Positions 1-55,536 of a stretch of DNA of 64,000 nt are shown here, in pieces. Position numbers and translations under genes: made by a program. Location of the stretch: positions 1-64,000 of the forward strand of contig MCFE01000037.1 in assembly GCA_002104905.1 (NCBI GenBank), written 5' to 3'. The stretch comes from Basidiobolus meristosporus CBS 931.73. Its lineage: Eukaryota > Fungi > Basidiobolomycota. The notes under the pieces were generated by a model. The model ran no database searches. It was not told the origin of the DNA and saw only the letters and a program-made list of their open reading frames with translations. Position 1 is the stretch's first letter. Every line of letters begins with the position of its first letter.

Positions 1-334
1 GGGACCTCTCAGAGCATATATTCAGACATCATTTGGACATTCCACTCTTTGTACCATTCTCCCTGGAAAAAGTACTCCTCAAAAGGTTTACCAGCTTGTT
101 GAAAAACTCTCCTTCCCTTCAAGTTACAAACTTCCTTGAGAAATACTACAGTGAACAAGCAGTTTTGCTACATTCTCCTCTAGACTTCAAAATTGAGGAT
201 ATTTGGGATACAGCAAAGTCCAAGTTTATCTTGTAGGCTTACTGCATCTCAAATATTCATATTCAATTTTGGCTTCTTTATTTATGGTTTAAATAAGGAT
301 TTCACCCTGTGGTGATTATCATCTCCCCCTAAGT
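1..334. mobile_element. Unassigned CpG-depleted repeat-like sequence abutting the truncated integrase
   Basis: Same CpG depletion as the Gypsy element, but it does not continue the integrase core (no SDNG/EF or YHP motifs). It may be a nested or different TE. Confidence 0.3.
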
Positions 335-3300
335 GCAATAGTGGCAGCATACGTTTCTGGGATAGCTTGAGGAAGACTAAACATGTGCTGACATCCACAA
401 TTACAAAGAGGTAGTGATTACCTTCATCACTAGTGGTGAAAGGTCCTGCTAGATCAATTGCAATATGATCCATAGGAATGCGTGCATGGATGGGACTCAA
501 TGGGTGAAATCCATGGCAGCTGATATTGTAAAGTTGACATTCTCTGCAAGACTTGACAAATTCTAGGCAGTCAGCTTTGATGTTTGGCCAGTGATATCCA
601 TCAGTGTGTAGCTCCTTCATAGGTGTGTCAGCTCCAAAGTGACCAAGTAAATGACTCCTCTGTATCAATGTTTTCCATTCATTGGCATGTGGGATTTTCC
701 AAGTTGCTGAATCCAGTTGAGGAATTATTTTGGATGTTGTAGAGAGCTTATGGGTTATGTCATGAATCACATGTCCCTCTCAATGTGAGGTTGGGAAAAG
801 TCTTGAAAGGTGGTCAGGCAGGATGTTGAGGATTCCTGGGCAATGAAAAACTGAATATTCATAATCAAGTTGAGTATTAAGCCAGTTTGTAAGCATTTGA
901 GTCAGAGTCTTTTGAGTATGGATATAGACAAGGGCTCAGTGGTCAGTATACAAGGAAAAAGGGTTACCCCAAAGTACTGATGAAGCTTCTTCAAGGCAAG
1001 GACTATAGCAAGTAGCTCCTTCTTGGTGGCAGAGTAGTTTCTTTCAGCAGGTTGTAGGGATCTGGCTTGAAAAGAGATTCAGTGAGGAGGATTTTGGTCT
1101 TCATCCTGGTATAGGACAGCCCCTAACCCAACATTAGATGCATCTGTAGCAACAATAAAGGTCTTAGTAAAGTCTGGGTAGGATGGAGTGGGTGCTTATG
1201 GGAGCAATTGGTAGAGTGACTGAAATGCTTGGTGATAAGCCTTGTTCCAGGCTGAGGGAAGATCAGGACTATGGTGTAATGCATCCAAAGGAGCACTCAA
1301 TGAGGATATGAGAGGAATGTGTTCCCTGAAATAGTCGAATACTCCAAGATAATGTTGGGGTTGCTTAGCACTTGTGGGTTTTGGCCATTCAGGAATATTG
1401 ACCAGTTTGAAAGGGTCAAGTTGGTGACCATCTGGTGTGACTATGAATCCAAGTAGATTGATTTTGAGGCTAGCAAAACTGCACTTTTCAGCATTAAGAA
1501 TCAGTCCAGCAGCTGTCAGTCTATTGCTGACATCAATGACATGAGTTGCATGATCATCACAGTTTGTGGAAAATATGATTACATCATCAGCAAATACCAA
1601 GGTGTATGATGCATTTTTAAGTATTATTGTCATGGCTCTCTGAAATATGCTGGTAGGGGTCTTTAGGCCAAATGGAGCTCCCTGAAACATCCATTGCATA
1701 TTATTCCAAGTAAAGGCAGTCTTATGCTGATGATCAGGATAGATCTGAATTGGTAATGTGCATTCTTTGAGTCCAATTTGGAGAATACTTTTGTGCCTAA
1801 TAGTGAGGAAAAGATATCCTGGATTCTTAGGACTGAGAATTTATCATCTTGGAGAAGCTTGTTCAGAGGTCTAGGATCCAAACAGGGTCTCTTCAGAGTT
1901 AGATTTCCATATGCATCCTTCTTGGGTGCAAGTGTCAAAGGGCTGTTGAATGTTGTGTTGACAGGGGCTTGAGTGATAATTCCATTGTCAGCCCACTTTT
2001 GGACTATTTCATCAACCAAGTGTTGACAAGAATGGGGAATTGGGTATTGCCTCCTCCATGTTGACTCGCCAGGTGGGGTTTCTAGTGTAGCAATGGATTC
2101 TGGAATAGTGAAGACACTGCTCCTGGGAATGGCTTGGTTTCTTTCTATGGCCAGCTGAATATTCAATTTGACTGATTGAGAATACACTTGAAAAGTTGGG
2201 GCTGACTCCTCTGCTTCCACATGGGGTGAGATAATCTCTGGAATCTGATCTATTATGGGTGGCTGAGATTCAGTGATTCCAGGATATGAAACTGGTAGTC
2301 CACCTATGTGAAAGCCAGGTTTGGTGAAGGTGTCTAAGGTAATGACTACCTGAGGTCCATCTGGAATGTCAATAACTTCCATTTGATGGATTATAGTTAT
2401 TGAAACACAATGTATGCTGATTGGGTTGATGATACCAATTCTTGGGGCTGAGAAGTCCTTGGCTGCATATATAATTTCTCCTGGTTGCTTTTCTATTTCC
2501 AATTCAAGATCTTTGACTACATTAGGTGATACAATGGAGTTAGATGATCCAGTATCCAGTAGTGCTAAATATGATTGGCTGTTGAGTTTGAGCGGCACCA
2601 TTTTAGCTTTTGGATGCGCAATTGGTTGCTTTTTTTCTTGAACAGTGGCAATTTTAGCCAGAATTTCAAGGAGGTTGTGATAATCTTGAACTGTAAGTTC
2701 TTCATATACTTCCTTATTCTCTGTCATTTTATTGTTTGAACTTTCATTTTGGATCTGAGTAATCCTTGGCAATGGTGTAAAGTTCTTCTCAGGACAGGCA
2801 GGTGATCTATGTCCCATCTTTCCACATTTAAAGCATTTGTCATCAACATATGGATTATCAATTTTGGTATTTTGCTGCTTCTCTGACATGTTTCCTGACT
2901 TGTTTGACTGCTTAGTGATGCCTTTGCATTCACTAGTAGAGTGATAGCATCTTCCATGAAGCTCACAATGCTTGGTAGCAGTTGACTACTTCTTGGTCAC
3001 ATGACTGCACTCTTTTCCTGTTGTTGCTGCATCTTGAGTGGAGTTGCCTGAAGCCTGGCTAGCAGCCGTGGTCATGGTGGTTGCTAGTGTACATATCTCT
3101 GAGATTTTGTCATAAGTGCATGCAGGGTTGCATGCTTTGACAATAGCAATATTACTCTACAGCTGGTGTGAAAAGTTTGAAAGAAAATGAGAAGTAAGCA
3201 ATGGATTGTCAGCACTAACTCCAGCTAATCTCATTTGTCTCTGGAATCTATTACAGAAGTGTTGCACAGATTCACCTTATTGCATTTTAGTTTTCTATAA

Positions 3301-3917
3301 GTTGCAGTTTAGATGCGCTTTCTTGAGAGGATCATCAAAATGGCCGCAAAAGAGGTTCTGGGCAACTTTCCATGTATTATCAGAAGGAATGTTCACTTCA
3401 ACCCAGTCAGCACCTTGAATGGTGAGACAGAGAGGCAAAAGTTCAGCCCAATTGATGTTGGGGTCTAGCTGGTGTGCAGCTAAGACATGATAAACTTGTA
3501 AAGAAACTCAGTAGGATTCTTGATGACATTGGCTCCTTCCACATAAAGAGGCAAGGATCCTGGGACAACCACCAGGGCAGGTCTAGAGGGAGATGTAGAC
3601 CTGGAGGATCCAAAGGCATGACTTCTTGGTGGCTGATGCAGAGCAAGGCTGAGTGGATTTTCAATGCTGTCAATTACAATGGCAATATTCTCCAGGGCTT
3701 CTTTGATAATTCCAATTTCATCTTGGTAACTGGAAATAACTTCAAGAAGTTCATCTCTACAATGATTGTCAGATCTTGTCTTGGCAAGCCTTGAGTGCTC
3801 AAGCATCAAAGTGTTTCTTTCATGCAAGATGTTTTCAAGCTGTTCTGTTAGTTCTTCCTGATTTCTGTGGGCTTCTTCCAACATGGAAAGATTTGGATTG
3901 CTTGCTGCTGAGGACAT
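335..3917 (-). mobile_element. Degenerate Ty3/Gypsy LTR retrotransposon (gag-PR-RT-RNaseH-IN), 3'-truncated within integrase
   Basis: Minus-strand domains occur in Gypsy order: coiled-coil gag (3917-3480), CCHC knuckle CFKCGKMGHRSPAC (~2830), protease LLDTGS, RT (PFGL...VFADD, 1196-1699), RNase H (IVATDAS...YSATKKELLAIV...TDH, ~1170-830) and integrase Zn finger/core (HLLGHFG...CRECQ...IAIDLAGP, 770-335). There are many stops and frameshifts. Integrase similarity stops at ~335. Confidence 0.95.
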
Positions 3918-5400
3918 ATTGTAAAGTGGTTGAATGTAATGGAATTCAACAAAAAAAATGTTGTATCCAAGAGAAAAGTGTAATAAACTCTTGAATGAGT
4001 TAACTGAACCTAAGTGAAAACTAAGTGCAGAATCTCAGAATTGTTAAGAATGACAGAAATATTAGCAGAGATGTTCTGGTCTAATATTGGTCTTATATAC
4101 AGCTGAGTTAGGCTATAAAGGCAACAGAGTAGGTTTGCTATGCAGGCTAGGCTTAGTGTTTTTGAGAGTGCAAAATGTGCTAGGCTTGGGTAGAAACTAG
4201 AATGGAATTGTTGAATTCGTAATTTTGCTGAGGCACAATCTTAATTTTGTTGAGACACGCACTAAACCAAAAGATTCAGTAAACTTTATTTATATTCTTC
4301 TGATCAAGTTGAATCAGTAAGCACCAAGAGACTGGACTAATTGAAATCTGTTGGGGTGTTGATAGGTGCATTAGATAAATGAGAAATTGCATCATTAATC
4401 AGCTGATGTCTTGGCAACTACTAAGTGGTTGGATGGATCTCAGATGACTAATCCTTGGGAAAGGCTTAGCAGATCAGTTGAGGACCTAATGACCAAATGA
4501 AAATTGATCAGGTGTGACAGCTAAAAATAGATTCTGAGAAGTGATAAAATAAACCATAACAGGGATTAGTTATGTTTGAGTTAGGGAAAATCAGTTAGGG
4601 TACTAGATTTTCTCATGGAGTAAAATAGGCTAAGTTTTAAATGTTGATGCACAACAGAAAACTTACCCAGGACATGAAAATTAGATAAGTTGTCCAAGCA
4701 GCCCCAAACCTTGCACACATGCTCTTGGGACCTTCCTATATCTATTTTATATGCTTGCTATGCCAAGACTATATAAAAATATAAGTACTACTTTTACATT
4801 CCATAAATCATTAAGTGAAAGCCACATAATATACTTGTCCTCCCAATCACTTCCAATATCTCCAAAACTCTTACAACAATTAGAAGATCAAGTAGATTTT
4901 GTGGTTTTCACTTAATGACTTAATGAATGCAGAAGTAAAATTTATACTTTACATGGCCTTAGCAAAGCAAGTGTGCACAATATGTTTAGGTAGACCTCAA
5001 GCATATGTGTGTAAAGTTTGGGACTGATTTGGACAACTCTGAAAATTCTCATGTTTTGAGTACCTGATACTCTGGTGAAAATGTCACAAGAGAATCCCAA
5101 GAGGGCATGTGGTCAGAATTCTCAGAGATATGTAGGTAAATATCAGTTTGAACAAATTAGGTGAATATTTAGGTGTAATTACAAGTTTTTACAACATTGT
5201 TATAATAGTGTTTACATTGATTCCATCTGCTGAGCAGTTGAGTAAGCCAGCTGGGTGATCTTTTATAGCACTCAATGTGAGATGGTATTGAGTATCTGCA
5301 TTTGAGGATTTGACATAAAATGTAGGACATCAGCACAATTGAAAATCACCCAATTTCAGCTTAGTTGGCTTATGCAGTTCTGGTTCACAATTGGTATTTT
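3918..5400 (-). mobile_element. Putative 5' UTR/LTR and adjacent TE-derived sequence
   Basis: Non-coding, CpG-depleted and upstream of gag, with a minus-strand TATATAA at ~4095. LTR boundaries and PBS could not be defined because no second LTR is in the window. Confidence 0.4.
4664..5062. repeat. ~400-bp imperfect palindrome (foldback/MITE-like)
   Basis: Left arm 4664-~4845 is the reverse complement of right arm ~4878-5062. Examples: CATTAAGTGAAAGCCACA vs TGTGGTTTTCACTTAATG, and AGTTGTCCAAGCAGCCCCAAAC vs GTTTGGGACTGATTTGGACAACT. The loop is ~30 nt. Confidence 0.8.
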
Positions 5401-5879
5401 ACAAACTTATACGAATCAATTGTAGCTTATACTATACTTTCCACACACCAGCCCTGTTCTCTATCTATGGCAGCAACAGTTTGCTGCATACCGGCAACTG
5501 GCACACTAGGTAATGGCTTCAGTATTCTAATTTCACAATAAGTGACTGCATATCAAAAGGTAGCCATAGGTAGTGCTGTTACAGTTCAATCAATTCCGTA
5601 TGTCTTGAAGACCAGACCAATCCCTAAAGCCATATTCCTAGGTGAGATAGTTCCATAAGTAAACCTTCAGTATGATCATTAGGCTTAGCCAGCCTGCGAA
5701 CACAACTAAACTGGTTTGTATGACCCTTCAATCCTCCATAACAGATTTGACGTGTGCTGACCATATGCGGGCTATATCAACCTAACCAAGTAACTCATTC
5801 AAAAAGGACAATCTCCATGTCCATCGGCTCGGTCAAAAATGGAGTTTAGCATGATTTTCCATGATACTCAGTTCCTTAC

Positions 5880-6540
5880 TGATTCATAATGTTAACTCTA
5901 AATGGGAATTTTGACTAAAAGACCTTTTAAGTAATCTATTGGCTATGTGGCACAAATCTTAATTGGAAACCAGCATATTTGTTATGCCAAGTAGTTCCTT
6001 TACCGCACACGCTTAGATACTGCGAGGGGCATTCATGAATATGGTTTATAAGGAAAGCTGAAGCATCACTAGCGGCATGGCTAATTCATATTCCAAAGAC
6101 GTGAGTAACTTTTGAAATATGCAGTGAACTGACGGGTGCCCAATTGTATTGGTATTTTGGAGATTTTAACTTAGTTTCCGCAAACTGTCTCGCCAGGGCA
6201 TGCATCCACAATATTTGTTCTCCTTGGGGCATGGTGAAGGATTCCAGTATTCCCTTACTGACCTGACAATTTTTCCATCATTGGTATAGATTCTTCCAAG
6301 TTTCGCTCTGAAATTGCTGAGAAGGAAGAACCTTATGCACTAGCCTCTGTTTATAGCCTGCGTTATCGTAGTTCCAAGTTCCTTGCGATGTGATAGAACA
6401 TTTTCGGTTCACTTGCTGTCTATTAATCCGTTTGATGTATACCATCCGTATTGGGGGTGTTATCAATAGAGACGATCTATAAAGTCCTGTATGTGAAATG
6501 CTCCTACTTTGGGAATTTTCGGGAAACTTCCCAGAAACAG
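5880..6540 (-). pseudogene. Possible decayed coding remnant, unassigned
   Basis: Protein-like stretches are interrupted by stops (AFHIQDFIDRLY**HPQYGWYTSNGLI; ESFTMPQGEQILWMHALARQFAE...GTTWHNKYAGFQLRFV). No family recognised. Confidence 0.2.
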
Positions 6541-6741
6541 TATCAGCAGTGTTGTTTTTCCGTGGATTACCATTTCCTACCAAGCGGCATTTCACTACCC
6601 GAATTACCACAATAGACGGACACAATCAGTCTCTACTAAATTAGGGCGAAATCTCTGGTTGCTCTTACGATTGGTAACGAATCTTGGGAAATAGAACTGC
6701 TTTATAAGCGTGACTGAGCTCCGTGCTTTGATGGAAATATC

Positions 6742-8145
6742 ATGAAGCTTCCGACCCTTTTCCTCTCGCTTACCTCGCTGTTCGCAGCAAACGTGCTCTC
6801 GCAGGCAATGCACAACATTGCTAGCCTCCCCGACGACGGAAAGAAATTTATCTCCTTTCAGACAGACGTCAGGTCTGTTCCTGAATTCAGTCCTAACGAC
6901 ACCTACTGGTCAGCCATCGACTGGAACAACGGATATATGGGAATGCAGACATGGGCCAACAAACGTGTATTCCTCTTCTCTCTCTGGGACAACAGCAATG
7001 GAGAAGCAACCGTACTGGAAGCATGCGATGAGTGTGTGACTAGTCGCTTTGGCCACGAGGGCACTGGGTCCCATATGCAGTATTTCTATCCATGGCTTGA
7101 TGGAGTGGATTACGGCTTCCAAATTGATTACGAGGAGGACGGTGATTATTTGATCTACACAGCCCACCTACGTATCGATGGCAAATGGATGCAATTTGGA
7201 AAATTACGTGTTATAAATGACAACCTAAGCTATGGCCTTGGCTACTTCGAGCAGTTTCTCGAAAATCCGCTGGGACTCAGCAATGGAATGCGAGTGGGCG
7301 TTTGGAGTAAACAAGCCTACAAACATGACGGCAGTAAGTACTGGTACCCCTCGCTAGGTGGCTCAATAACGTATACATATCCTGGGCCCGACGGTACATG
7401 GGGCGCAGGTTTTGCAGAAGACAAAACGGCAATCTGGATGTCTATCAACGGTCCAGCCGACTATCATGGATACAACAACAAGCCCATACAATGGCAGTGG
7501 TATCCCTACGATGCCGCTAATTTGGGAATAGACATCGTTGTTGCAAATGAAACTGATAGACGTTGTGGCTGGTTCGGGGACGTGATGCGTCAGTGCCAAC
7601 CTGGCTACTGCTGCTCCAGCTATGGCTACTGTGGCACCACCTATGTTTACTGCGAAGGCTCAACCAAACTAGAATATGATGCCCCCGTGACAAACCGCCG
7701 GCCCCAGGTTAAGAAGACCGCAAAGGAGCAAGGAACCAAGACCAAGTCGCATATTCCCTCTCTGCACTCTAATGACCTAAAGCTTTCTAAATTTAAACTT
7801 GCCAATAATGCCGGTAGCTGTTCCTGCACTAGGGACTTAGCAGATGTATACATCGATGATTTCTTAGTTGCATATCAAAATCAAGGCTATTTGTGGGATG
7901 AGGCTGCTTGGAAGTCGGGCTCGGCCCTATTTGACTATAGAGGCAAGAGTGGTGCTGGTAAAGATTATGATTTACATATCGAAGTACAATCTCGATCACC
8001 TTTGAAGGAAGGAAAACAAATTGGCAGGCCGCTCTACGAGTGCTTCCAGCAGTCGGAGAAGCTACCCAGCTTGAGCAACATCCAAACCCCGAAAAAATGC
8101 ATCCTGGATGTCGACTCAGTCTCCGTTATTGCTTCCTTCAAATAG
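6742..8145 (+). CDS. Secreted protein: DUF3472-like domain + CBM18/hevein chitin-binding domain + unassigned C-terminal domain
   Basis: Intronless 467-aa ORF with signal peptide MKLPTLFLSLTSLFAANVLS. DUF3472-like motifs: YWSAIDWNNGYMGMQ, RVFLFSLWD, FGHEGTG...YPW, FLENP. Hevein motif CG-x7-C-x4-CCSSYGYCGTT-x3-C at ~7561-7660. Confidence 0.85.
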   Translation: MKLPTLFLSLTSLFAANVLSQAMHNIASLPDDGKKFISFQTDVRSVPEFSPNDTYWSAIDWNNGYMGMQTWANKRVFLFSLWDNSNGEATVLEACDECVTSRFGHEGTGSHMQYFYPWLDGVDYGFQIDYEEDGDYLIYTAHLRIDGKWMQFGKLRVINDNLSYGLGYFEQFLENPLGLSNGMRVGVWSKQAYKHDGSKYWYPSLGGSITYTYPGPDGTWGAGFAEDKTAIWMSINGPADYHGYNNKPIQWQWYPYDAANLGIDIVVANETDRRCGWFGDVMRQCQPGYCCSSYGYCGTTYVYCEGSTKLEYDAPVTNRRPQVKKTAKEQGTKTKSHIPSLHSNDLKLSKFKLANNAGSCSCTRDLADVYIDDFLVAYQNQGYLWDEAAWKSGSALFDYRGKSGAGKDYDLHIEVQSRSPLKEGKQIGRPLYECFQQSEKLPSLSNIQTPKKCILDVDSVSVIASFK

Positions 8146-8946
8146 ATGCTTGCGTTTGAATGTCAGTCACCTTTACCGCTACAATATGCTTATCGATGAA
8201 AACGCTGGTACGATAAGTGTGCACTGTGCATTTCCAACACCCACGTATTACTGCCACAACCATGTGTAAAGTGTATACAGTGTTTTTGCGAATTATCATC
8301 AATAAATACAGGCACCACGTGTTACACAAAACAGTACGATCACTTTTCTACGAGCAACGTTTTAGCCTGTACTGGTTAGACAACATCTTCCTTCTGATGT
8401 TTACAACTAAAGACTTGACTGCCAAAGATGGTGATTTTAGTTGATTTTCTGAGCACTGTTTGATGGTCGCAACTCCACCATAAATATGGAATGGTGTGCC
8501 ATACTAAACACCTACCAAATATGGAACTAATCAGGAGATTACTTATTTGGGATTAACTGCGCATTCACGTTTGATGTTGTGCAGCACTCCCGAGTAGTTG
8601 GATCTGAGGCATTGGAGTGTTTGTTTATTCACACCGCGTGACCTCGTCGTGTCAAAAGATTTTGTAAGCAAAATTGTTTACAGGTCCAGAACCGTTCAAT
8701 CCATGTCTTGAGCTAAAACTGATAGTGTGGAGCATTAGACCAAGGCCAAGCCAGTAAGTGCACTATTAGTATCAAATTAAGCATGCCCACCGAGGAAAGA
8801 CAATGGCATGATTCAACACCCGGCAAAGCAGTGGAGTAACTCATCCACCAAACAAAGTGGAATATTATAGCTGACAGTAAAAATCCAATAGAGGTGTGTA
8901 TAAGGTAGTCCACATCCGTATTGATGTAGGTAACGCAATTTTTAGA

Positions 8947-9127
8947 GTAGTGCAGTGCTAAAAGTTATCAGAGATTTCAATGCTAGCATGGTGAAAGCAC
9001 TCTATAGCAGTGCTAAAAGTTATCAGAGATTTCAATGCTAGCATGGGTGAAAAGCACTATACATAGTAGTGCAGTGCTAAAATATCAGATTCAATGCTAG
9101 CATGGGTGAAAATCGCACTCTATAGCA
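8947..9127. repeat. Minisatellite, 3 copies of a ~55-64 bp unit
   Basis: Units GCAGTGCTAAAAGTTATCAGAGATTTCAATGCTAGCATGGTGAAAGCACTCTATA start at 8952, 9007 and 9071. Each contains the palindrome ATGCTAGCAT. Confidence 0.9.
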
Positions 9128-9400
9128 ATAATTGTTTCTAATGTTTATTACTATAGAATACAAATTAAAGGGTGATGGGTCGGAATATTTCTAGATACAA
9201 GGATACCGCCGGAGATCAAGAAATACTCTTCGTGGTTCAGCAAATTAATTACTAAAATGAAGAAATGGGAGCGCTGGGGAATGATAAATAGGGGTCGGAC
9301 TGTTGCGTTCTAATTCTAAAAGATGGAATTTTCAAAAAATTCGTACATTCGAACAGAAGAAAGGATGGGAATGTGCTGACTATCGGAATACCACCTCCGC

Positions 9401-12400
9401 TTAGCCGACGATCTTCTCCACCATGGAGCTGGCCAGCTCGGCATTACGAATCATTTGGCCAACAGACAGCGCTTGGAAGGAGCCGCAGTCCACCAAGCCG
9501 GAGAAGCCAAGCTCGGATAAGATCGCGTTCTGATTCCGCCTCTTGGTGGTGTCTCTGGGGCGCGACACCATCGTGTACAGAATCGAGTGGACTGCCTCAA
9601 TGATGGGCACATTCTGGCTGCTGTTGAGGATTTGGTTCATCTTTGTCTGGAGATTGTCGTACCTGGAATGCGGCCAAATATGGGTTAGCATCAAACATGC
9701 ACGACGAATACTTCGGTTCACGCTCACTCACACTAGGGAAAAGACATCAGGCAGCGCAACGGCTGCTTCGGCCAGGAAGCTGTAAAGGAATAGGAACTCC
9801 GCTTCGTATTCGGCATTGTTTAGCATGGTAACCATGAGAGAGACCAACAGTATAGCCGTGGTATCATCAGGAATTACAAATCTATCGAGTAGTTTGAAAT
9901 ATGTATGACTTAGGACGGTGTTGTCGATCTCCAGGTCGTATATGCCTACGGTCCACAGCAACTCTCGAAGCTCCCCGTTCTTAGCCGCGGTAGGCAACAG
10001 TGGTGCAATGTAGCCCAACAAGTTAGGGTTCACTCGCTGCTTATCAGCGTTGCCTTTGTTGAAGATTTCCAGGAAAGACTTCAGCACGTTGGACGTGGCA
10101 GTCTTTGTGGATGGCTGCTTCAATCCCTTCAGCAAGGTGGCGGCCAGGGCAAAAGAAAAGTTTGTGCGGAATTGAATGCCGGTGGCCTTGTCCAACTCTA
10201 TCGCAATATCTTCCAACGGCTCACGGGCCTTCATTAGGAAACTGTCAGGAGTCTCGTCCGCGAAGAATCCATTGGTGTCCAAGGAACGCACCACGACCTC
10301 CATTAGATTGAGTGCACTATGGAAGAGAGGAAGATGTCCGATTTGTACAAGAGCAGCACCAAGCCAGAACATCTGCTGTAGATATCTTGAATTGTGCGGG
10401 AGGTTCTCGACGATGTTCGTCAAGCACGTGACAATACTAACGATCAGGTTGCAATCGCTTTCGTCGAACAAGGCTAATGAGCCGCGCAATGCGACCAGGA
10501 TTTGATACAAGAGATCATCGTCCACCTCATCCTTTGCCAGGCAGCCAAGCACGATAAAGGCTCTAGGCTGGACGGCCGGGTTGAAATTGAAAGCAGTGCT
10601 CGTAACCAGACTCATCCATCTAGCTCTCCATATGTTGGCGACATCTACAGCATTTGAGGGTTAGAAAGCATCGCAAAACTCAAGCATTCTCCACACTTAC
10701 CGGTAGATACGGCGCCAAGCTCAATCACCTCCAATAACGAATGCACTATGGTCTCCAGTGAGGTAAGCGGCACCGATTCTGGCATGTCGGGCACGGCATC
10801 GGGAAGTCTCGCAAAAGCGTTCCCGATCATCCTGTTCAAACCAAACAACAGCCGGAACTTGGGCTCGGAGAACTCGCCCAACAGGTGATTCAGCTTCTTT
10901 AGATTGGCCTCCTCCAGCGGCAATGAGGTGCAGAGCGATTGCACGATATTGACAACCAAGCCGTGGATGGAAGAGCGAATGATAGGAGGGCCGATCGAAA
11001 CCAGCATCGACACGATGTGAAACAGCTCGGGCAAATAGTGTTGAACATGCAACCGGTTGTTGAAAGAGAGCATCAAGTTGAATCGAATCAGCACCGCTAT
11101 CTCCACCCAGGACGAATGATCGGTCAAGGTTCTCATGGGCTTGTTGGAGGTGCTGGAGATCACCTTACGAAGTCGGGATATCAGCTTTCCTCTGACATTG
11201 ACCGACGACAAAGTAACCGCGGTCTCCGCCATGAGTTCGGCCTGTGGAGACCCGATTCCATGCTCAACCGCATACTGCACGAATGCATCCAGCACCGGAG
11301 TGATAATCTCGTCGACCTTGCCGATGGTACGCCATATCTTTGCCTGGATCGCCGGGGTGATCTCCACTTCTTTCACCGTCATATCGATGAACACCTTGAT
11401 GATCTCCTTCGTCTTTGCCAGATTGTGCTGGTTGTCACCATCGTTCCTGGAGAATTCCGCCAGATTTGACAACCACGGAGCCATGTATTCTAAGCAAAGG
11501 TGCTTCAGGGACGGGGTTGACTTGTTAAACCCAACGAAGCACTCGCTCAGAAACTCCAGAGTGAGGTGTGGCTCGGAGGCGGCCAGCATCTCGGATATTG
11601 AGACGATAAAACTCGAGTTGTTTGAAGGGATGCATAGCCCTTGCGCGCTCAACAATTGGTTTCCGACATTGAAATTGAACGTCAGGCTCAGAGCGTACAG
11701 CAGATTATACGCAGCAGACCGGAGGTTCGGGTCCTCGCTCCCGCTGTTCAGCAAAGCCATGTTCAGCAAGGTGCCCGGCACATCGTTCGGACGGATGATC
11801 CTCTCCGACACGTTGACTGGCTTGGATAGTTGGAATCTGGCCTTCGAATTCCTGATGGCCTTGAATATGAGATCGACCTTGGGACTTGCAAAGGTCATCG
11901 AGGAATTCCCACGATCGTACTTGATCACCAGATTGTTTTCGTCGTTGCGGGTGGTGACGAGTGCAACATCGTCAATATCCGATACATGATACACGTCGTT
12001 GAAGTAGGAATTCAAGCCGAAGATATCCTGCTTTCGAAGCGACGTCACTTGGACCGTCTCGTTGGTGATCTTGATGATGGTAGGCATCGGCTGCCTGAAA
12101 TGGGGGATCTTTGTCACCGGCGAGAAGATAAGTCCGGGGTCGGTTTCTAGAGCAATGGTGCCCTTGGGTAACCTCAGCTCTTGCAGTGGGATGTAGTCGT
12201 AGAGATCGTTGAGGTTCGAAGGGAAGATCGTTTTCTTGCCTATCTTGGTCGTCAGCGGACGGCCCAGCTTCTTGCTGAACTTCTTGAAGGCTGAGTTGAC
12301 ATTGTACATGTACAAAGCAGCTAGATTCTGGACGGCATCTGAGGGCAAGATCTGCAGGAACTGGTTGATCCATTGGTTCTGTATTTCGTTGGCATGGCCA

Positions 12401-15400
12401 AACTGTGTGATGTCAACCAAAAGCTCGTAGGGTTTCCCCATGACCGACTCCATAGTCTGCAAGATATGAAGAATCAACAGTTCCATGTCGATGGCATCCG
12501 CGATCACTCGTCGAAGGATCAAGTACAAAACAGGCCTCCGCTCCTTAGACAAACCGCCTTCGTAAAACAGCCGCTTAGATTTGATGGGCTCCGTGTTACG
12601 GTAGCCATTTCGCTGCATGAACTCCCGGAACATCTCATTTGAGGCGCCAATCTTCGAATCGAACGAAGACCGCTCAACCCTCGGAACATCAGGTGGTGGG
12701 CCCAGTTGTGCTAGCACGGTCGATAGCTTCTCGTGTGCCTTCTTGCTTGTTGACTGAGGCTTTTCCAGATCAGAATTAACCGAGCCATTGGCCACTAGAC
12801 CAGTGTTGGGGGCAATCAGGAATGGCTTCGATTGCTTGCGAGTGCTCAAATCGCGGCCTATCCGCTCGAGGTTGTCGAAGACGTGACGATGCAACCTGGA
12901 GAGATCCGTGTCTTCCAGACGCGAATTGGTTGTGATGATGGACTCCGTATCGGAGTCGGATGGGGCGACCGATATGTCCAGCAAAAAGTTGGAAACTTTG
13001 TGGATATTCGAGGTCAGGAAATCGTTCAACGTGATCATGAAAGACTCCTTGGTCCCGAATAGTACGTTGTTTGCCAAGTTCTGGATCACCTTCGTGATCA
13101 ACAGCAGCCCCCGCCTGATCTCTTTGTTGTCAAACGACGCCACCAGATTGTGGGTCTCTGGAGCTACGATGGCAGGGCAGAAGAATCGAAGGAAGATGAA
13201 TCCACCTACGGCCGCTGATTTGGCTTCGGGGAATCGTTCGCCAACAATGGTAGACAAAAAGTGGCAGATCTCCCGGAAAGCGCGCGGAACTTTAGGGGCC
13301 GAGGCAACAATCACATCCAGGAAGGCTTGAGACATTTGCTTAAGGTTGGCCAGGTTTTTGGCCGCATCGCTATTCATCGACATCTTGGTGGGGTCCAGTT
13401 CATACGCAAGGTGATTGTTGGAAACCATCTCTCTAAGGATGGGCTGCAGGGTGGATCGGAGGTACTCTGAGCCGTACATCTTGGCAAACGCCGCCAGGAG
13501 CCTGGTAGCCATGCAGTTTCGTCGGAAAAGCTCCGAGGAGGATTCGGTCTTCATCAGCTCTCTCTCGATGACCGCTTTCATCAATTTCATGGTGTTTCCG
13601 CGCGTGTCGAAAATCGCCAGCAACACCGAAGCAAGCTCATCAATGTCCGGGACCGGACAGACTTCGCAAAGGGAGAGTGCGATGACGAGATCGTCATCAG
13701 TGATCAGCTCCACCAGTTTGTCGTAACGGTCAGTCATCGAGCTTTCGGCCAACCCCTCGAACTCCGTTCCCTGGTTGAGAATGTTTGTGAGCACTTGCAT
13801 GAAAGCAGTACGGGTCTTTGGATCGTCGTGGTAGCCCATCGACAAAGAATACTTCAAACCAGAGTCAATATTGGCGCTCAGGAGGTTTGACAACGCTAGA
13901 ATCGTGTAATCTTTGAGGGGTCCCAGATCCTTGCAATACTCCTTGGACTAATTTCCAGAAATGTTAACCTAGCGGCTGTTGTGGGTGTGATTACGGCTGG
14001 GGCTTACCTTTGAGAGCAAGGATTGAAGGTCAGGGTTGTTCTTGGCTCTACCATTATCAATGGCCTGTCGAAAGTTTGATGAATTGGCCCTGGGCCTTTC
14101 GGTGAGAAATATGGGATGAATTTACCTTTTCCGGGATGACCTCTAGAATTCTACAACGATTTAGCAGCTTGATGAAGAAGGAGAAGTACTTGTAAAAGAG
14201 TCGTGATTTGCTTTGGCGCAAGTCAGCATCGTGCTGCAGTGGCTCTGATGGCTGCAAGGGCAGCTGGAACAAAAGCACCACAATGGTCTTCATGCATGCT
14301 TGGTCCAAGTCTCTGTGCAGCTTTTCGTTTTTGTGGAAAATGATCTGCTCCTCCAACGTCATTTGGTTGTCGCTCGATTTCTGTTCAATCTTGGCGATTA
14401 GATTCTGCCACTGCTTAGACGCTACCAATGCCGCCACTTACCATAGAGTAGTCGGATGTCCACTCCACGACCGTTTCCAGCATTCTGTTGCGGAACTTGA
14501 TCTCCTGTCGAAGACTAATGTAATCCTTCTTGCTCATTAGGATTTCGCACATCTGGCACATCTTGATCTTGATTCTCAGCGCAACATGTCCGAAGCCCAG
14601 TCGGTTCAAATACCGAGCGAATGAGAGTATAAGGTTGCCGATATCAATGGAATAGAACTGCTCTGATGGCTCCTGTGTTCCCCATAAGCGAAAGGATTAG
14701 CAACCTGTTGGTGTGAACACATAAATCGCGAAAGGGCCAACCTGCAAACGATCCAATATAAGTCTGACCACCGAGATAGCCTGTTCAACAAACAGAGTGT
14801 ACGTATCCTTGCAAATCGCTTCGCCCTCGGCATCGAAGAAAACCACAACAATGCTCTCCAGTTGTTTGAAGAGTATAGCTAGATAAGTTGGTCACGTTAG
14901 CAAAACACATGAAGGAAGACATCATGGAAAACGATAGATACCATGCAAGGCGGGGCTTAGTTCAGCTCCCAAGATCTCCTTTATCCCCTCGCGGACAATC
15001 ACATTGTCGCACACTAACCATTCCACCATCTCCTGGATAAAGCGATTGATCATTTTGCTGGTCTCTAAAATTCTGCGGTTTTCGCTACTGGATCTATGAA
15101 GCGTGTGTGGGGAAGGGAATACCGAAGCGTCATGCTCGTTTCTCTTTGCCGCGGAGCTTCGGAGGCATACTCCACCCAGCGCACACAAGAAACCGGTGTA
15201 ATTCTGCCATTCCCCACGGTCTTCAACTGGCTCAGTTTGTGGGACACTTACGATCGATTTGGTTGCGTTAGTTAGCTTCTCGTAAAATACTCCAGCAACG
15301 CGTCGACGCGTATCCGGTTGCTCAGGCTGAGCATCGTCCGGAGGACGGGCAATGTTCTGCATCAGCATTCTCCAGCGTCTGTAAGCCTCCTCGCACGCGG

Positions 15401-21939: not shown

Positions 21940-23133
21940 CTAAGCTTGTTGTGAGACAATCGCCTCCTCCAATAGTTTGGCTCTCTTCTCGAAGAACTCA
22001 TACCACATTTTCAGTTCGTTTGGAGAGAGCTGGGAAAGAGAATCCTGGAAGCGCGATTCATTGAAGTCGAAAAGGGGACTCATTGGGTACTGTTCCATAT
22101 AAGGTGAGGAAAGTGAGGGTGTGTGCGGTGGTGTTAATGGTGGCATGGTCTCCGAGCCTTGTTGTTCGGGAGTGACCATTGCCCAATCCCTTCTTCTGCG
22201 CTGGATCTTTGATTTACGCATGGTTACTGGACGGTCCTTATGGTGGAGTCGAGAGTAGAGTCCACATGCATTGCATATGGGCTGGCCTTTGTCGTTTTTC
22301 CTCCAAAGGGGGGTTTTTGTCTGATGACAGTTGACACATTCAATGACGGCTTCCTCACCATCCTTCGACTTGGTGACGGTGGGTTGGGGTGTCTTACGAG
22401 GGTTCTGGCTAGGGTAAGGCTTAACGTGATCAGGTACAGCAGGTTTGTGGCGAATGTGCAACGGGCGATGAGCTTGATACTGCTTATAGTAAAGACCACA
22501 CGCGTTACATAATGAGTGTTTCCTATCAGGAGTACGTCTCCAGAGTGGGGTACTAGTGACACCACAGTTGAAACAAACCAAGTCGCGTTGTGACTTGGTC
22601 TTACTGACAGGCTTCTTCTCGGCATCCATTCCATTATCAGATTGTTTGGTCAATGGGGAAGCATCGGGGCCTGAGGAGTAGTTCTCTTCGTTCAAGTCGA
22701 AGTAAAGATCAAAACCATTCTCGTCCATCATGGAGTAGTTGTTGCGGTTGTGTTGGTCATTTTGTACTTGGTTTAGAGTCATGGTCCCATTGGCAACGAG
22801 CTGTTGCTGTAGTGTGATGATCTCCAGTGGGGACATTGTGTTCATCATGGAGTTGTTGACGTGAAGTTCGTTGGCAAGAAAGCCTGGGCTATCCGGGCTG
22901 CTACATATGCTTTCAATAGGGCTAAAGCCAGGAGTGAGCATGTTTGTGAAGTCAAAGGCGTGGGTAGCAGATGTGCTATTGAAGCTGTCAGTAAGTGAGA
23001 GGTCCGAGCGTGGAGCAGTCCATGAGAAAGTGTCGGACACTGGTATCTTCATATCCTGATATTGGGAGACCAGGGCAGCTTCTGGAGTATGTTTGCAGGA
23101 ATCTTGGTTGACAAAATCGAAGTTGAACGACAT
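21940..23133 (-). CDS. GATA transcription factor with two zinc fingers
   Basis: Intronless, ATG at 23133. Fingers are CFNCGVTSTPLWRR...CNACGLYY and CVNCHQTKTPLWRK...CNACGLY, with a basic tail RKSKIQRRRR. Confidence 0.92.
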   Translation of the reverse strand: MSFNFDFVNQDSCKHTPEAALVSQYQDMKIPVSDTFSWTAPRSDLSLTDSFNSTSATHAFDFTNMLTPGFSPIESICSSPDSPGFLANELHVNNSMMNTMSPLEIITLQQQLVANGTMTLNQVQNDQHNRNNYSMMDENGFDLYFDLNEENYSSGPDASPLTKQSDNGMDAEKKPVSKTKSQRDLVCFNCGVTSTPLWRRTPDRKHSLCNACGLYYKQYQAHRPLHIRHKPAVPDHVKPYPSQNPRKTPQPTVTKSKDGEEAVIECVNCHQTKTPLWRKNDKGQPICNACGLYSRLHHKDRPVTMRKSKIQRRRRDWAMVTPEQQGSETMPPLTPPHTPSLSSPYMEQYPMSPLFDFNESRFQDSLSQLSPNELKMWYEFFEKRAKLLEEAIVSQQA

Positions 23134-24398
23134 GGTACTATGCAGGCGGAGTGGAGTGTGGGGGACGTAGAGAGTGGAAGTTTGCTGGAAACAGAACAAC
23201 TATAAAGGATAAATTACAATCGGTCACAGAATGCTTTTCTAATGCACTTCTTTGTTTAGAATATAGATCAAATGCTGTTGGAAGTGAGTGTTCCTTTTTT
23301 CGTCTGGCGGTTAGTGGGCTTTTATAGGAAATCTTTGCCTACCAGTAGCGTTGGCCAATCAAGAGGAATCAGGTAGGTCAGGAATTAGGTGAGCTGAGGG
23401 TTGTTGCACGAACCAATATAGGAAATTGCTGTTTGGGATCAATTGAAATAATTGACCTAACACCACAGAGTGTGGTGCTCATTCTCTCGTAATAGACACT
23501 TAAGGAAATGTACATTTCGGTCGAAATGGTGAGTGATCAAGTGACCTAAATCTCAGATGAACATGGAATTTCCATTTTGTTACTTGCAGCTGGAGTAGCT
23601 TCGATACGGGATATTTAGTGGGATCGAGCTTGGCAGGTCCATCGAAGTGTGGAAATGAAACCAGGCCGGCATTTTTAGGGGATTTCCACCATTCGAGTCA
23701 ATTGGTTTACGCCACCGTTGGTGTTGGCAAGTGTTGAGGATTTTCAATGGCCACGGCCCATTAGCAGTGCTCGGGGATTAATGAAAACCGATTGCTGGAG
23801 GGAGCAATGGCCAATCAACAGTCGAGTCACCTGATTCGATGGGAATTATTGTTGAATATTCGAATGTGATCACCCGCGGTAGGAATGCCTATCTCTATGA
23901 AACGCTTGCCAAAATAGTAGAGGCTGGAGGTAGCCAGGAGCCTACCTCTGTGGCACTTTTGGCCAAAGTAATGAAACTCAATGCCATACCTAGGCCACAG
24001 TCCAAAAAAATCTGCTCATCTTCCTTAACTACTGGTATTGGCGCTGTTCGTTGTACATAACTCCATACTTTTTGGTACTTGAATAGCATGATGATATATG
24101 ACCAACCGCCCACTGATCACTGTTGTGCTTGCAAAGTTATTCGAGCACAACATTAGCCACGACTAATATGGCGATTTTGAGATGAAGTAATCATCTGCGA
24201 ATCTTATACTCTCGATAAACTCTATCTGATCACTTGCATTGCTCTTGTGGGCGTTTAAGCATTTGAGAAGCCGAACACCCTGACTCCCTACCACCTACGT
24301 AGAAGCTAAACGCCTCAATTCTCCGCAATTTACGACATATATTCTGTAGCGAACCAGTGTTGCTGGTCTTGGTTCTCTTCGCCAAAATCTAAAAAGCT

Positions 24399-41373: not shown

Positions 41374-43059
41374 ATGGTTGCAATTAAATTACTATCCGCC
41401 GTTTCTCTCCTCGCCGCCACTTCCATGGCTTGGGTTTGGCCCTTGCCTGAGAAGATGGAAATCGGTGAGAGCATCCTGACCGTCAGACATGGCTTCGATA
41501 TCGACATCGAGGCGAAGTCCGGAAGAGACATCCTGCGCAGGGCTGTCAAGCGCTACAAAAAGATCATCTTCAACACTGGCGAGTTCGGTGACTTGTTGCA
41601 CCCAGTCACCAAAACTGTGTTCCCCACCCCTACTCCCAACGTGCCGATCCACGAGCCCATCCCCGAGGCCAAGACCACTCGCATCAAGGGTCTTGTCATC
41701 AAGGTCAAGGGGAAGAACACGAAACTGAACCTTGACACCGACGAGTCATACACTCTTGATGTCCCAGCTGATGGCTCACGCGCTGTCATTGAGGCAGAGA
41801 GTGTGTACGGAGCTCTCCGTGGTTTGGAGTCCTTCTCTCAACTCGTTCACTGGAGCAGTGATGTCAACCAACACCGCATCCCCATGGCCCCAGTCAAGAT
41901 CGAGGACAAGCCTGCCTTCCCCCATCGTGGTTTCCTCATCGATACCTCTCGTAACTACCTCCCTGTTGACGACATCAAGCGCATCTTGGATGGCATGTCC
42001 TACAACAAGCTCAACATCTTCCATTGGCACGTCATTGACCAGCACAGCTTCCCCCTCATGACCAAGACTTACCCTGAGCTGGCCATCCACGGAGCCTACA
42101 CCAAGAAGTGGATCTATGATGAGGATGATGTCCGTGAGATTGTCCGCTATGCCAAGGACAGAGCCATCCGTGTGATTCCTGAGTTCGATATTCCAGGCCA
42201 TGCTTACTCCTGGGGTCTGGCTATGCCTGACATCGTCAACTGCATGAACATGCAGCCCGATTGGGACACCTATGCCGCCGAGCCCAACAGCGGACAACTG
42301 GACATCATCAACCCCAAGACTGATGAGGTTGTCCAGAACTTCCTCAAGGAAGTCGCCCAATGGTTCGATGACGACTTCATCCACATCGGTGGTGACGAGG
42401 TCAACATGAAGTGTTGGGAGATCACTCCAGGATACCCCGAGTATCTTGAGAAGCACAACAAGACCATGGAGGATGTGCTCTCCGACTTCGTCATCAAGAC
42501 CCACAAATGGGTCCGTGAGAACAACAAGACCCCCATCACCTGGCAAGAGGCCCTCACCAGTCACAACATCTCCATGGAGAAGGATGTTGCCGTCCAAGTA
42601 TGGCTCAGCCCTGAGGATGCTATTGATGTTGTCCGTGCTGGACACAGAGTGATTTCATCCAGCTATGAAAGATGGTATCTTGACTGCGGTCACGGTGGCT
42701 GGATCAGTGACAACGAAGGCAACTCGTGGTGCGATCCCTTCAAGAGCTGGCAAAAGGCCTACAACTACGACATCACAGCCAACATGACTGCTGAGGAGGC
42801 CAAGCTGGTTATTGGCGGTGAGGCTCCTGCCTGGGCCGAACAAATCGACCCCATGAACATTCACCAAACCTTGTGGCCACGTGGTGCAGCTGTTGCCGAG
42901 GTTCTCTGGTCCGGCATCAAGCTTGAGGACGGCACCTACCGCAAGACCGGTGATGTGTTCCCACGTATTCATGAGCAAAGAGCACGCATGGTTGACCGTG
43001 GTCTTCCTGCCGAGCCTTTGCAACCTTTGTGGTGTGCCCGCAACCCCAGAAATTGCTAA
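41374..43059 (+). CDS. Secreted GH20 beta-N-acetylhexosaminidase, copy 1 (allotype A)
   Basis: Signal peptide, HRGFLIDTSRNY, catalytic HIGGDE, WYLDCGHGGW, GGEAPAWAEQ. TATAAATA at 41322. Confidence 0.97.
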   Translation: MVAIKLLSAVSLLAATSMAWVWPLPEKMEIGESILTVRHGFDIDIEAKSGRDILRRAVKRYKKIIFNTGEFGDLLHPVTKTVFPTPTPNVPIHEPIPEAKTTRIKGLVIKVKGKNTKLNLDTDESYTLDVPADGSRAVIEAESVYGALRGLESFSQLVHWSSDVNQHRIPMAPVKIEDKPAFPHRGFLIDTSRNYLPVDDIKRILDGMSYNKLNIFHWHVIDQHSFPLMTKTYPELAIHGAYTKKWIYDEDDVREIVRYAKDRAIRVIPEFDIPGHAYSWGLAMPDIVNCMNMQPDWDTYAAEPNSGQLDIINPKTDEVVQNFLKEVAQWFDDDFIHIGGDEVNMKCWEITPGYPEYLEKHNKTMEDVLSDFVIKTHKWVRENNKTPITWQEALTSHNISMEKDVAVQVWLSPEDAIDVVRAGHRVISSSYERWYLDCGHGGWISDNEGNSWCDPFKSWQKAYNYDITANMTAEEAKLVIGGEAPAWAEQIDPMNIHQTLWPRGAAVAEVLWSGIKLEDGTYRKTGDVFPRIHEQRARMVDRGLPAEPLQPLWCARNPRNC

Positions 43060-43659
43060 ATATTATATCCTAACCTTGATTAGGGGCTTTCAGTACAATG
43101 CTCGTGTAGTACTCCCCTAGTTTCGTTTTGTATTCACATTGACTTGATATTTCTATTACGATTATATATAAATTCCATTCTTTACTGAAATCAGATTGAC
43201 GACCGTAAACTTGAAAAGCTCTGTTCTCAAGATACATAGAGTATACAGTGCACTCAAATATGTGAATCATGAAACATGAAATATACTCTTGAGACTAATC
43301 GCTATGGACTCCAACTGGATGAGAATCAAGCTGCTTGTATATATCACAGTTAATTTCTATTTTTGCAAGTGTAGCTAGTGTAACCAAGTTTGTCGGTGAT
43401 CCAAACTACGTCGAATTCGGAACGATTGTCAAAATAGACATATTTTTTGACCAATACGCCCTGGATGTTCGTTGCGACGAACTCGGAAAGGAAGTGATTT
43501 CTATTTCGGGAAGTAAGCGACTGATCAGCTGATTTTTAGAGTAGGGTGTAATTTTCCCGAATTAGTTATATTACGTTGCTCCAGATACTTCATTTCAATG
43601 GTCAGATCGGTATAAATATGGAGCTCAGTCCTAGGTGGTAATCAAAAGTTCTCATTTCA

Positions 43660-45345: not shown

Positions 45346-45951
45346 GATATGTAGCAAGATTATATCATTTGTAAAAGTTACATATTTTGGTTATATATAC
45401 TTTGAATCATCTGAGCTCAGACTGAAAATAAATAATTGGTGTTATTAAAAATAACTTGTATATTTCTTACAATTACTCTAAATGAAATTATTGACCCGGA
45501 GCACTAATATATAATATATTTCTGGGCCGTGTAACCATTACGCTGAAGTATTGTGCCTTACAAAGAATGTAACCAATATTTAGAATTCCGATCGTGACTT
45601 GTTCGTGGGAAAATTTGATTTTGATCGGTATCGTACATTATGATTAATCAATCATTCATCGATTTCTTCCATTCGGATCATTCACCAAACTAGGAATTCA
45701 TTAATATATTCTTTACAGAAGACCACCTCCGTTCAAATCCAGTTTGATGAAATTATGCCTTCTCCACAAATCGCAACATTATTTTATTTCCCAGGCCTAG
45801 ATGTCGCTTTTTGGGAATCGATTTGGCCTCCGCTACTTGAGGCGATTGAAAAGAATGGATGGAAAATCCAGGGCAGCTGGACACTTTCAATTTAATATCC
45901 ACTGAGCACTATAAATATGAGGGTCAGCATTGAAATGTGAAAACAATATCA

Positions 45952-54928: not shown

Positions 54929-55536
54929 ATGGCTTACCCTAAATGCTTCGACCAGGTTATGTTGAAGATGAAAGCCGAATAAGCATCATGATTTTTGAAG
55001 TTTTTTAATAATTAAGTTATAAATCAACAATAACGGCAATGATATAAATAAACACATTTCCCTACTAATTGCAGACGTGTGAATATTTCCAGACAATCTT
55101 TTCTATTGAAAACCTTTCCCCTGGGATGTCGAGAGTATCAAATTCATATGGTGGCGTAATATGGTTAGTTTTTATTCACTCACTGTGATGATCCCAGATA
55201 AATTTAGTTAAAATCCTTGAGCATTTCATCCTTAATGGTTATATAGCGTAAGTTACAGTGATTAATACTTGCTATTTATAGCTTGATTAAGTCCCAACAA
55301 ATCCAAGTGATTTTCTATAAATTCGGTGAGCTTAAACTGCATTTGGATAGAATGGAAATTGTGGAGGTCTTCAGGCTGGAGTAGGATGTTGTTTTTAATC
55401 TGAATTACCTCCATTCATAGTCACATCGAGCAGCCATATATAGCACCTGGACCTTCCTAGATTCCAGCACGCATTCCGACTCCTTATAAATAATGCAACC
55501 AGGATTCTGTCTAGGAACAATTCATTTCCTCACTCG

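Follow-up and report, generated by a model that had tools for sequence, protein, structure and literature searches.

What the joining of a mainly bacterial domain to a hevein-type chitin-binding module means in a fungus, and what the resulting protein would do, are the questions raised by one gene of Basidiobolus meristosporus CBS 931.73 (assembly GCA_002104905.1), which lies 6.7 kb from the end of contig MCFE01000037.1; the first 64 kb of that contig (64,000 nucleotides) form the window analysed here. The window's list of open reading frames (ORFs) contains the gene as a single long, complete frame of 467 amino acids, and an exact-sequence look-up showed that this ORF equals an NCBI gene model on the contig. 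Because the model is 1404 bp long, i.e., 467 codons plus a stop codon in a single exon, the gene is intronless as annotated, in agreement with an earlier first-pass annotation of this DNA made from the sequence alone. We found that the protein has a new architecture, a DUF3472 domain followed by a carbohydrate-binding module of family 18 (CBM18) and then by a lectin-like tail, in a family with chemistry recently defined in bacteria. Our preferred reading, to which we give about an even chance, is that it is a secreted, modular, glycan-guided DUF3472 hydrolase that most likely cuts the backbone of O-glycoproteins next to chitin.

Only two Pfam families matched the whole protein at E≤1, DUF3472 (PF11958; E 7.1e-37, 127.9 bits against a gathering cut-off of 24.8, residues 14–238) and Chitin_bind_1 (PF00187), and an NCBIfam search gave no match; PF11958 (InterPro IPR021862) is renamed ‘BPSS1860’ in a newer Pfam release. 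Searched exhaustively with HMMER, 1.84 billion representatives yielded 315 relatives at E≤1e-3, only 16 of them at E≤1e-10, and 136 of the relatives were aligned (alignment A1) as the basis for the family conservation figures given here. Thirteen columns of A1 are nearly invariant, and exactly two Glu columns are conserved family-wide, corresponding to Glu106 (98%) and Glu174 (93%); Gln69, Asp83, and Arg184 are also conserved. The window protein keeps all family-invariant residues (GY.G.Q, S.WD, FG.EG.G, W, and F.E), and the motifs quoted in the first-pass annotation (W..GY.G.Q, FSLWD, FG.EG.G, and FLENP) are indeed all present, as W61..GYMGMQ69, FSLWD at residues 79–83, FGHEGTG at 103–109, and FLENP at 172–176. 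An AlphaFold2 (AF2) model of residues 22–262 computed on A1 is an all-beta sandwich (predicted local distance difference test [pLDDT] 93.8, predicted TM-score [pTM] 0.92), and the folded domain therefore spans ∼240 residues; the earlier claim of a ∼210-residue domain was right as to identity and too small as to size. With this model, Foldseek returned 4QHW (E 4.5e-17) and the entries 8PMU, 8PN3, and 8PN5 of the Bacillus cereus protein HC7 (∼1e-13), and VIA-align returned 4QHX at Z 30.1 (root mean square deviation 1.8 Å over 229 residues) and 8PMU at Z 26.4.

The A1 profile also reached these structures when run against PDB sequences (4QHW, 1e-67; HC7 [8PMU], 2e-42), and the three HC7 entries were themselves deposited under the name ‘DUF3472 domain-containing protein’. 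HC7 reportedly stems from B. cereus strain K8 and is said to have been presented by Narimatsu et al. in 2024 (Nat Catal 7:386, cited in PMC13003899), the year in which the di-glutamate class was reportedly defined. In HMMER alignments the wild-type HC7 chain reads FQEDW where the E200A chain reads FQADW, with position 200 assigned by chain count. This Glu200, replaced by Ala in the two substrate complexes (8PN3 and 8PN5), shares a profile column with Glu174, and the Glu in the FGGEGTG motif of HC7 aligns with Glu106; both candidate catalytic carboxylates are therefore kept in the window protein. HC7 is described as a di-glutamate mucinase: it cleaves mucins that carry Tn- and T-O-glycans, and its CBM5 broadens the range of substrates that it accepts (PMC13003899). 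A second studied member, BPSS1860 of Burkholderia pseudomallei, is a surface protein required for host-cell attachment, and its mutants lose 90% of attachment (PMC7998038). With an enzyme, HC7, and an attachment factor on record, the description of DUF3472 as uncharacterised is outdated. We also observed a CxxC pair, C95/C98 (positions 7024–7035), eight residues before Glu106, which is kept in the clade of CBM18-bearing proteins and is not family-wide; the pair may make a disulfide bond that is particular to this clade and close to the putative active site.

Several points weigh against our preferred reading of the window protein. The assignment of the counterpart of Glu106 as HC7's second catalytic Glu is suggested by conservation. 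Identity to HC7 is just ∼20%, and phmmer with the single sequence did not reach HC7, for which the profile was needed. Residue 175, directly after the second Glu, is Asn, as in 4QHW; it is Asp in HC7 and in 65% of the family. The closer solved relative, 4QHW, carries the deposited name ‘putative two-domain sugar hydrolase’ and is without known activity, and BPSS1860 is described as an adhesin and not as an enzyme (PMC7998038). Finally, the CBM18 module has six rather than eight Cys residues and scores barely over threshold, and precomputed annotation rates the hit as weak.

Regarding that module, the first-pass annotation had called both a DUF3472 domain and a hevein-type CBM18, and both stand above their Pfam gathering cut-offs, the latter by a narrow margin (30.2 bits against 27.8, residues 274–305); neither hit can be put down to chance. 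Residues 273–310 align by phmmer with lectin-C, hevein, and the six-Cys Ac-AMP2. The Cys residues lie at positions 275, 285, 290, 291, 297, and 304, and the last two of the eight-Cys heveins are missing; in the alignment to lectin-C and hevein, Ser292, Tyr294, Tyr296, and Tyr303 occupy the sugar-platform positions, leaving the aromatic platform intact. Because its ratio of nonsynonymous to synonymous substitution (dN/dS) against paralogue P0001 is only 0.13, the module is maintained. The ratio is 0.16 for the DUF3472 domain and 0.14 for the tail, i.e., all three folded modules are under purifying selection, and 0.45 for the linker, where selection is relaxed. As previously noted, this linker is basic by composition (10 K/R against 4 D/E in residues 306–350). 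The N-terminus consists of a hydrophobic core (residues 3–19) followed by SQA (residues 20–22), read directly from the sequence as a putative signal peptide, and it is conserved in paralogues P0001 and P0002. The earlier prediction of a secreted, chitin-directed protein agrees with the domain calls from Pfam and phmmer. Word-index protein searches with the whole protein, the domain, and the 136-sequence profile recovered almost exclusively B. meristosporus paralogues, and within the searches made the DUF3472–CBM18 fusion appeared only in this species.

The Cys-containing tail, also noted beforehand, has four Cys residues in the last 117 residues (C360, C362, C434, and C453) and matches no Pfam family. 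It is conserved in P0001 and in the B. ranarum protein P0018 (phmmer, 1e-22), where a Ser/Thr/Pro/Lys linker joins it to a different DUF3472 paralogue without CBM18, and it is therefore a mobile module within the gene family. In blastn comparisons with L003 and L004, the loci of the shorter, 330-residue paralogue P0002, the match ends at 7726 and restarts at 8214, so that the tail-coding block is a clean insertion or deletion. An AF2 model of the tail, computed on three sequences, has the order beta-alpha-beta-beta-alpha-beta-beta (pLDDT 77.7, pTM 0.73). Its top six solved matches by VIA Z score are Y3 (7.7), Gnk2 (7.2), PDLP8 DUF26 (7.0), LDL (6.6), PDLP5 DUF26 (6.5), and Zt-KP4 (6.1), each of them a small lectin or toxin that is secreted and belongs to the same fold group, and the next scores are 5.2 and 4.5. 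Foldseek likewise ranks DUF26 and ginkbilobin-2 first, at E values of only 0.015–0.06, and the DUF26 motif C-X8-C-X2-C is absent from the tail. We read the tail, with modest support from the model, as probably a second module that binds glycans. Searches of the Atlas with the tail, by feature and by shape, produced just noise-level GpJ/PNGase or PAS-like matches (TM ∼0.4). A PAS-like reading at that score was considered and rejected; the module is predicted to be secreted and disulfide-bearing, and the searches of solved structures favor the DUF26/Gnk2 fold.

The origin of the gene was addressed with an IQ-TREE phylogeny of 74 rows (LG+C20+F+G4), drawn with distant clades as outgroup and with support given as ultrafast bootstrap/SH-like approximate likelihood ratio test. 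All 18 Basidiobolus rows fell into one clade (100/95) with branch lengths of more than 1 substitution per site. Within it, the four CBM18 proteins form a clade (100/99) whose sister is a pair of single-domain proteins, P0004/P0153 (100/100). Since the CBM18 clade is nested in this way, the hevein fusion was assembled inside an old fungal expansion that is specific to Basidiobolus, by domain shuffling. The sister of the Basidiobolus clade is a gene of Chlamydoabsidia padenii (Mucorales) together with P0082 (96/80), the fungal group is joined in turn by metagenomic sequences that form a clade of their own (99/96), and labelled bacteria, with DUF5077 plus DUF3472, fall outside it; an earlier tree of 136 rows was in agreement. 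Cluster look-ups gave the same picture: the close relatives are all from Basidiobolus (20 or more gene models of B. meristosporus together with proteins of B. ranarum, 25–89% identity) and are mostly single-domain, with DUF3472 alone in 10 of 10 checked by Pfam, and the next named match is the Chlamydoabsidia gene, which is itself intronless and is flanked by Argonaute, aconitase, G-gamma, and kinase genes on a 1.1-Mb contig.

These results bear directly on the first-pass proposal that the domain had been horizontally acquired, which had named grouping with fungal homologues as one outcome that would speak against it. The idea of a recent import from bacteria, joined to a fungal CBM18 once it had arrived and with the missing introns and the edge of transposable element-rich DNA marking the landing site, can draw on the intronless gene, the retroelement fragments upstream of it, known transfers of the domain from bacteria into animals (PMC7864903), and a reported richness of Basidiobolus in candidates for horizontal gene transfer (PMC7466969). 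The family is also mostly bacterial, as had been stated: a bacterial genome scan turned up at least 590 loci, spread over Armatimonadota, Verrucomicrobiota, Planctomycetota, Acidobacteriota, Bacteroidota, and others (the scan used A2, a narrower alignment of a neighbouring clade, and labels one bacterial clade only), and bacteria make up 100% of the nearest Atlas clusters. However, the domain groups with fungal homologues in the tree, and the acquisition claim, as tied to this gene, fails for that reason. Against a recent import stand the at least 20 Basidiobolus models in one long-branched clade, the normal eukaryotic neighbourhood of the Mucorales sister gene, an identity to any bacterial sequence of only ∼25%, and a GC content across the gene (0.44–0.48) like that of neighbouring genes. 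Intronlessness is weak evidence of transfer because 36% of native B. meristosporus genes are intronless (PMC7466969). We consider a recent import very improbable and, since the tree contradicts it, rejected that reading. For the fungal clade as a whole, descent from a bacterial source is plausible: the family is overwhelmingly bacterial, it seems to be patchily distributed in fungi, and several bacteria-to-animal transfers of DUF3472 are on record (PMC7864903). Any such transfer would be ancient and not tied to the window gene.

Further members of the family surround this picture. The clade that adjoins the fungal one (P0006, P0007, P0011, P0016, and P0019) comes from contigs that are 37–52% coding, have 37–40% GC, and carry tandem copies; it looks eukaryotic, which these features do not prove. 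One metagenomic contig (Joint Genome Institute [JGI] metagenome 3300047123, Ga0499899_0084; locus L001, positions 1076–15024; 40% GC, ∼52% coding) carries at least five tandem DUF3472 copies that are 60–76% identical and spaced ∼2.5–3 kb apart, and its source is an uncultured, probably eukaryotic organism in which the family, within the clade adjoining the fungal one, has undergone a separate expansion. Within B. meristosporus, the 330-residue DUF3472–CBM18 paralogue P0002 occurs as a divergent pair in L003 (3227–4219 on the minus strand and 8001–8993 on the plus strand), and the same pair is found in L004, on a second contig. The copies of the pair are near-identical (synonymous divergence [dS] 0.015, against ∼0.4 in comparison with the window gene), reflecting recent duplication, gene conversion, or assembly haplotypes. 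The ∼1.1 kb before the start codon of the window gene (5622–6741) aligns with the upstream region of both P0002 copies as part of a single match of 75% mean identity that extends through the coding region, and the duplicated unit therefore includes the promoter region. The paralogous loci L002 and L003 have in their flanks, in either orientation, copies of short segments from 4598–5196 with 77–93% identity; these are a dispersed repeat associated with DUF3472–CBM18 genes. Two other paralogues, P0040 and P0063, have long Thr/Val-rich C-terminal extensions (∼150 residues) without a Pfam family, which by composition look like heavily O-glycosylated stalks or wall anchors.

The fate of the two Glu residues differs among these paralogues. 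Every invariant residue is kept in the CBM18 clade, in P0004/P0153, in the Mucorales gene, and in the bacterial representative. In contrast, both Glu residues are replaced in P0073 and in the tandem P0115/P0161–P0163, and P0009/P0155 have Asp at the second position. That degenerate paralogues lost these residues and the CBM18 clade did not suggests that those of the window gene are retained for function. Locus L006 (MCFE01000078.1; 2637–3443 and 10001–10807) contains a tandem array of intronless, 268-residue DUF3472 paralogues of the P0115 type; in P0115 and P0161–P0163, Gln69 is replaced along with both invariant Glu residues, and these four members, judged by sequence, are probably non-catalytic derivatives.

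Taken as a mechanism, our preferred reading would run as follows. The protein would be secreted, and CBM18, possibly together with the lectin-like tail, would dock it on chitin or on surfaces rich in N-acetylhexosamine (HexNAc), candidates being fungal walls or, in the guts of hosts that feed on insects, insect peritrophic matrix and debris of cuticle. The docked catalytic domain, if competent, would use the Glu106/Glu174 pair to hydrolyse a neighbouring substrate, most likely at peptide rather than glycosidic bonds, in the backbone of densely O-glycosylated (mucin-like) proteins in or beside chitin. Such docking would parallel, by analogy, the CBM5 of HC7, which tunes the substrate range of that enzyme. 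The ecology of the genus fits the proposed mechanism, since Basidiobolus spores are carried on insects and the fungus is found in the guts of insect-eating amphibians and reptiles (PMC7466969).

Three other functions have to be weighed against this. The first-pass annotation had guessed at a chitin-anchored protease or hydrolase, giving as its reason that the GMQ and EQFLENP motifs loosely echo the catalytic motifs of glutamic peptidases of family G1, in which the catalytic dyad is Gln/Glu. An eqolisin-type peptidase with such a dyad could invoke Gln69 and Glu174, both nearly invariant, and the proposed comparison of folds did find a resemblance to glutamic peptidases: neprosin (7ZVC_A; Z 14.8 over 192 residues) was the top match outside the family, and aspergilloglutamic peptidase (1Y43_B) scored Z 9.7 over 151 residues at 3% identity. 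However, the latter score is not distinctive among concanavalin A (ConA)-like folds, being lost in a crowd of unrelated lectins, lyases, and glycoside hydrolases (GHs), and there was no Pfam match to Peptidase_A4/G1 at E≤1, nor to the neprosin (G3) family at the same threshold. The characterised relative, HC7, uses two Glu residues and not a Gln/Glu pair. Because there is no Peptidase_A4/G1 match, the motif echo is not homology; we rejected the G1 reading and give it almost no credence. The protease guess itself is still reasonable, because HC7 cleaves peptide bonds with two Glu residues, whose candidate counterparts are both conserved here.

The two Glu residues might alternatively serve as acid/base and nucleophile of a glycoside hydrolase or transglycosylase acting on chitin, chitosan, or beta-glucan, with CBM18 targeting the substrate as it does in chitinases of fungi. 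CBM18 is usually attached to chitin-active enzymes, the ConA-like jelly roll resembles GH16 lichenases (Z 13.6–13.8) to an extent statistically tied with neprosin, and the deposited name of 4QHW also implies a sugar hydrolase; yet the GH16 motif ExDxxE is absent from the protein, no GH family matched in Pfam at E≤1, and HC7, the sole member with demonstrated catalysis, cleaves peptide bonds, which makes a glycosidase fairly unlikely. A non-catalytic adhesin or lectin, in which the sandwich binds glycans and CBM18 ties it to the fungus's own wall or to insect chitin so as to mediate attachment, would agree with the attachment loss of BPSS1860 mutants (PMC7998038), with the many lectins and CBMs among the VIA-align matches at Z 8–10, and with the adherence of capilloconidia to insects (PMC7466969). 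Some Basidiobolus paralogues have also lost both Glu residues and must be non-enzymatic. The retention in this clade of both Glu residues, Gln69, and all family-invariant residues, at a dN/dS of 0.16, would nevertheless be hard to explain if catalysis were dispensable, and we regard a pure adhesin as unlikely.

To our knowledge, almost all known proteases that cut mucins or other glycoproteins are bacterial. A fungal member that is intact, under selection, and equipped with a chitin anchor of its own would bring di-glutamate chemistry into the eukaryotes, and it would be a concrete candidate for how a gut-dwelling, insect-vectored fungus passes chitin–mucin barriers. A bolder reading, tentative and well short of an even chance, is that the 20 or more genes of Basidiobolus are the first radiation of di-glutamate O-glycoprotein peptidases in eukaryotes, and that a sub-clade of them was rebuilt as a three-module, chitin-anchored enzyme that dismantles the mucin–chitin composite of the insect peritrophic matrix or host gut mucus. 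If this were true, the three modules would be the catalytic sandwich, the hevein CBM18, and a previously undescribed lectin-like domain, the sister arrays without both Glu residues would be derived binding proteins, and the whole would be a fungal counterpart of bacterial mucinases with relevance to gut colonisation and perhaps to gastrointestinal basidiobolomycosis. More generally, a bacterial-type domain in an intronless gene does not equal recent horizontal transfer, and a DUF label no longer equals an uncharacterised domain.

Because retroelement fragments lie upstream, where GC content drops to 0.35–0.40, the gene does sit at the edge of transposable element-rich DNA as first noted, and a RasGAP gene follows downstream (Table 1). 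Elsewhere in the window we observed seven tandem large ORFs of 561–576 residues on the plus strand (41374–57222), each with an opposite-strand shadow ORF of ∼289 residues, and an ORF on the minus strand (21940–23199) whose product, with two zinc fingers of the GATA type, is a putative transcription factor.

Table 1. Positions of the DUF3472–CBM18 gene, its parts, and its flanking features in the 64,000-nucleotide window.
Feature	Position	Strand	Basis
Whole gene, single exon, 467 aa + stop	6742..8145	+	ORF list, NCBI model
Putative signal peptide, aa 1–22, predicted cleavage after SQA	6742..6807	+	read from sequence
DUF3472/PF11958 beta-sandwich domain, aa 23–262, putative catalytic module	6808..7527	+	Pfam, AF2, VIA-align
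Codon of Glu106 (FGHEGTG), putative first catalytic Glu	7057..7059	+	conservation, HC7 alignment
Codon of Glu174 (FLENP), putative second catalytic Glu	7261..7263	+	aligned with HC7 Glu200
CBM18 hevein-type module, aa 273–310, six Cys	7558..7671	+	Pfam PF00187, phmmer
Basic Lys/Thr-rich linker, aa 311–350	7672..7791	+	composition
Segment in long forms (this gene, P0001), absent from 330-aa paralogues	7727..8213	+	blastn
Cys-containing alpha/beta module, aa 351–467, putative lectin-like domain	7792..8142	+	conservation, AF2
Retroelement fragments (gag zinc knuckle, aspartyl protease, reverse transcriptase), upstream flank	282..2889	-	Pfam
Part of NF1-like RasGAP gene, downstream eukaryotic neighbour	9728..13893	-	Pfam RasGAP, CRAL_TRIO_2, PH_NF1; model 2600 aa

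Among known systems, the tail compares with Y3 of Coprinus comatus, LDL, Gnk2/DUF26, and KP4, which are small alpha/beta sandwiches (Z 6.1–7.7, 82–99 residues aligned) and are small, disulfide-bonded, and secreted, as is predicted for the tail; they have no sequence similarity to it, and the Z scores lie in a range that the VIA tool calls ambiguous. Proteins of these nearest folds bind LacdiNAc, alpha-Gal, and mannose. The CBM18 of fungal chitinases and lectins and the six-Cys Ac-AMP2 have in common with our module a Cys-rich core of ∼35 residues and a Ser-x-aromatic-x-aromatic...aromatic platform, and the module differs from the CBM18 of known chitinases and lectins in being fused to DUF3472. 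Neprosin (G3, 7ZVC) and aspergilloglutamic peptidase (G1, 1Y43) share the beta-sandwich, on which carboxylate-based catalysis is plausible, but not a sequence family. Within the family, the DUF3472 proteins of centipede venom (PMC7864903) are likewise eukaryotic, secreted members of a mainly bacterial group; most of them keep DUF5077 and nest among bacteria as recent transfers, whereas the Basidiobolus proteins form an old, single-domain fungal clade. BPSS1860 belongs to the same Pfam family as the window protein and, as may also hold for the latter, is exported or exposed on the surface and works at the surface of a host; unlike the window protein it is a single-domain bacterial protein, described as an adhesin and with no enzymology reported. 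BACCAC_02064 of Bacteroides caccae (4QHW/4QHX) is the closest solved structure and shares the FLEN motif, but it has an N-terminal DUF5077, which the fungal clade lacks, and neither CBM18 nor tail. The comparison with HC7 is the most instructive one: the two proteins have the same Pfam family and fold, both invariant Glu residues, secretion (predicted for the window protein), and a chitin-type carbohydrate-binding module after the catalytic domain. They differ in that module (CBM5 in HC7, the eukaryotic hevein-type CBM18 here), in host (bacterial and fungal), and in sequence (∼20% identity), and the window protein has an extra lectin-like tail, Asn rather than Asp after the second Glu, and a putative activity. 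If that activity is real, the pair would be a natural case in which one catalytic domain has recruited HexNAc-binding modules that are not homologous to each other, CBM5 in Bacillus and CBM18 in Basidiobolus.

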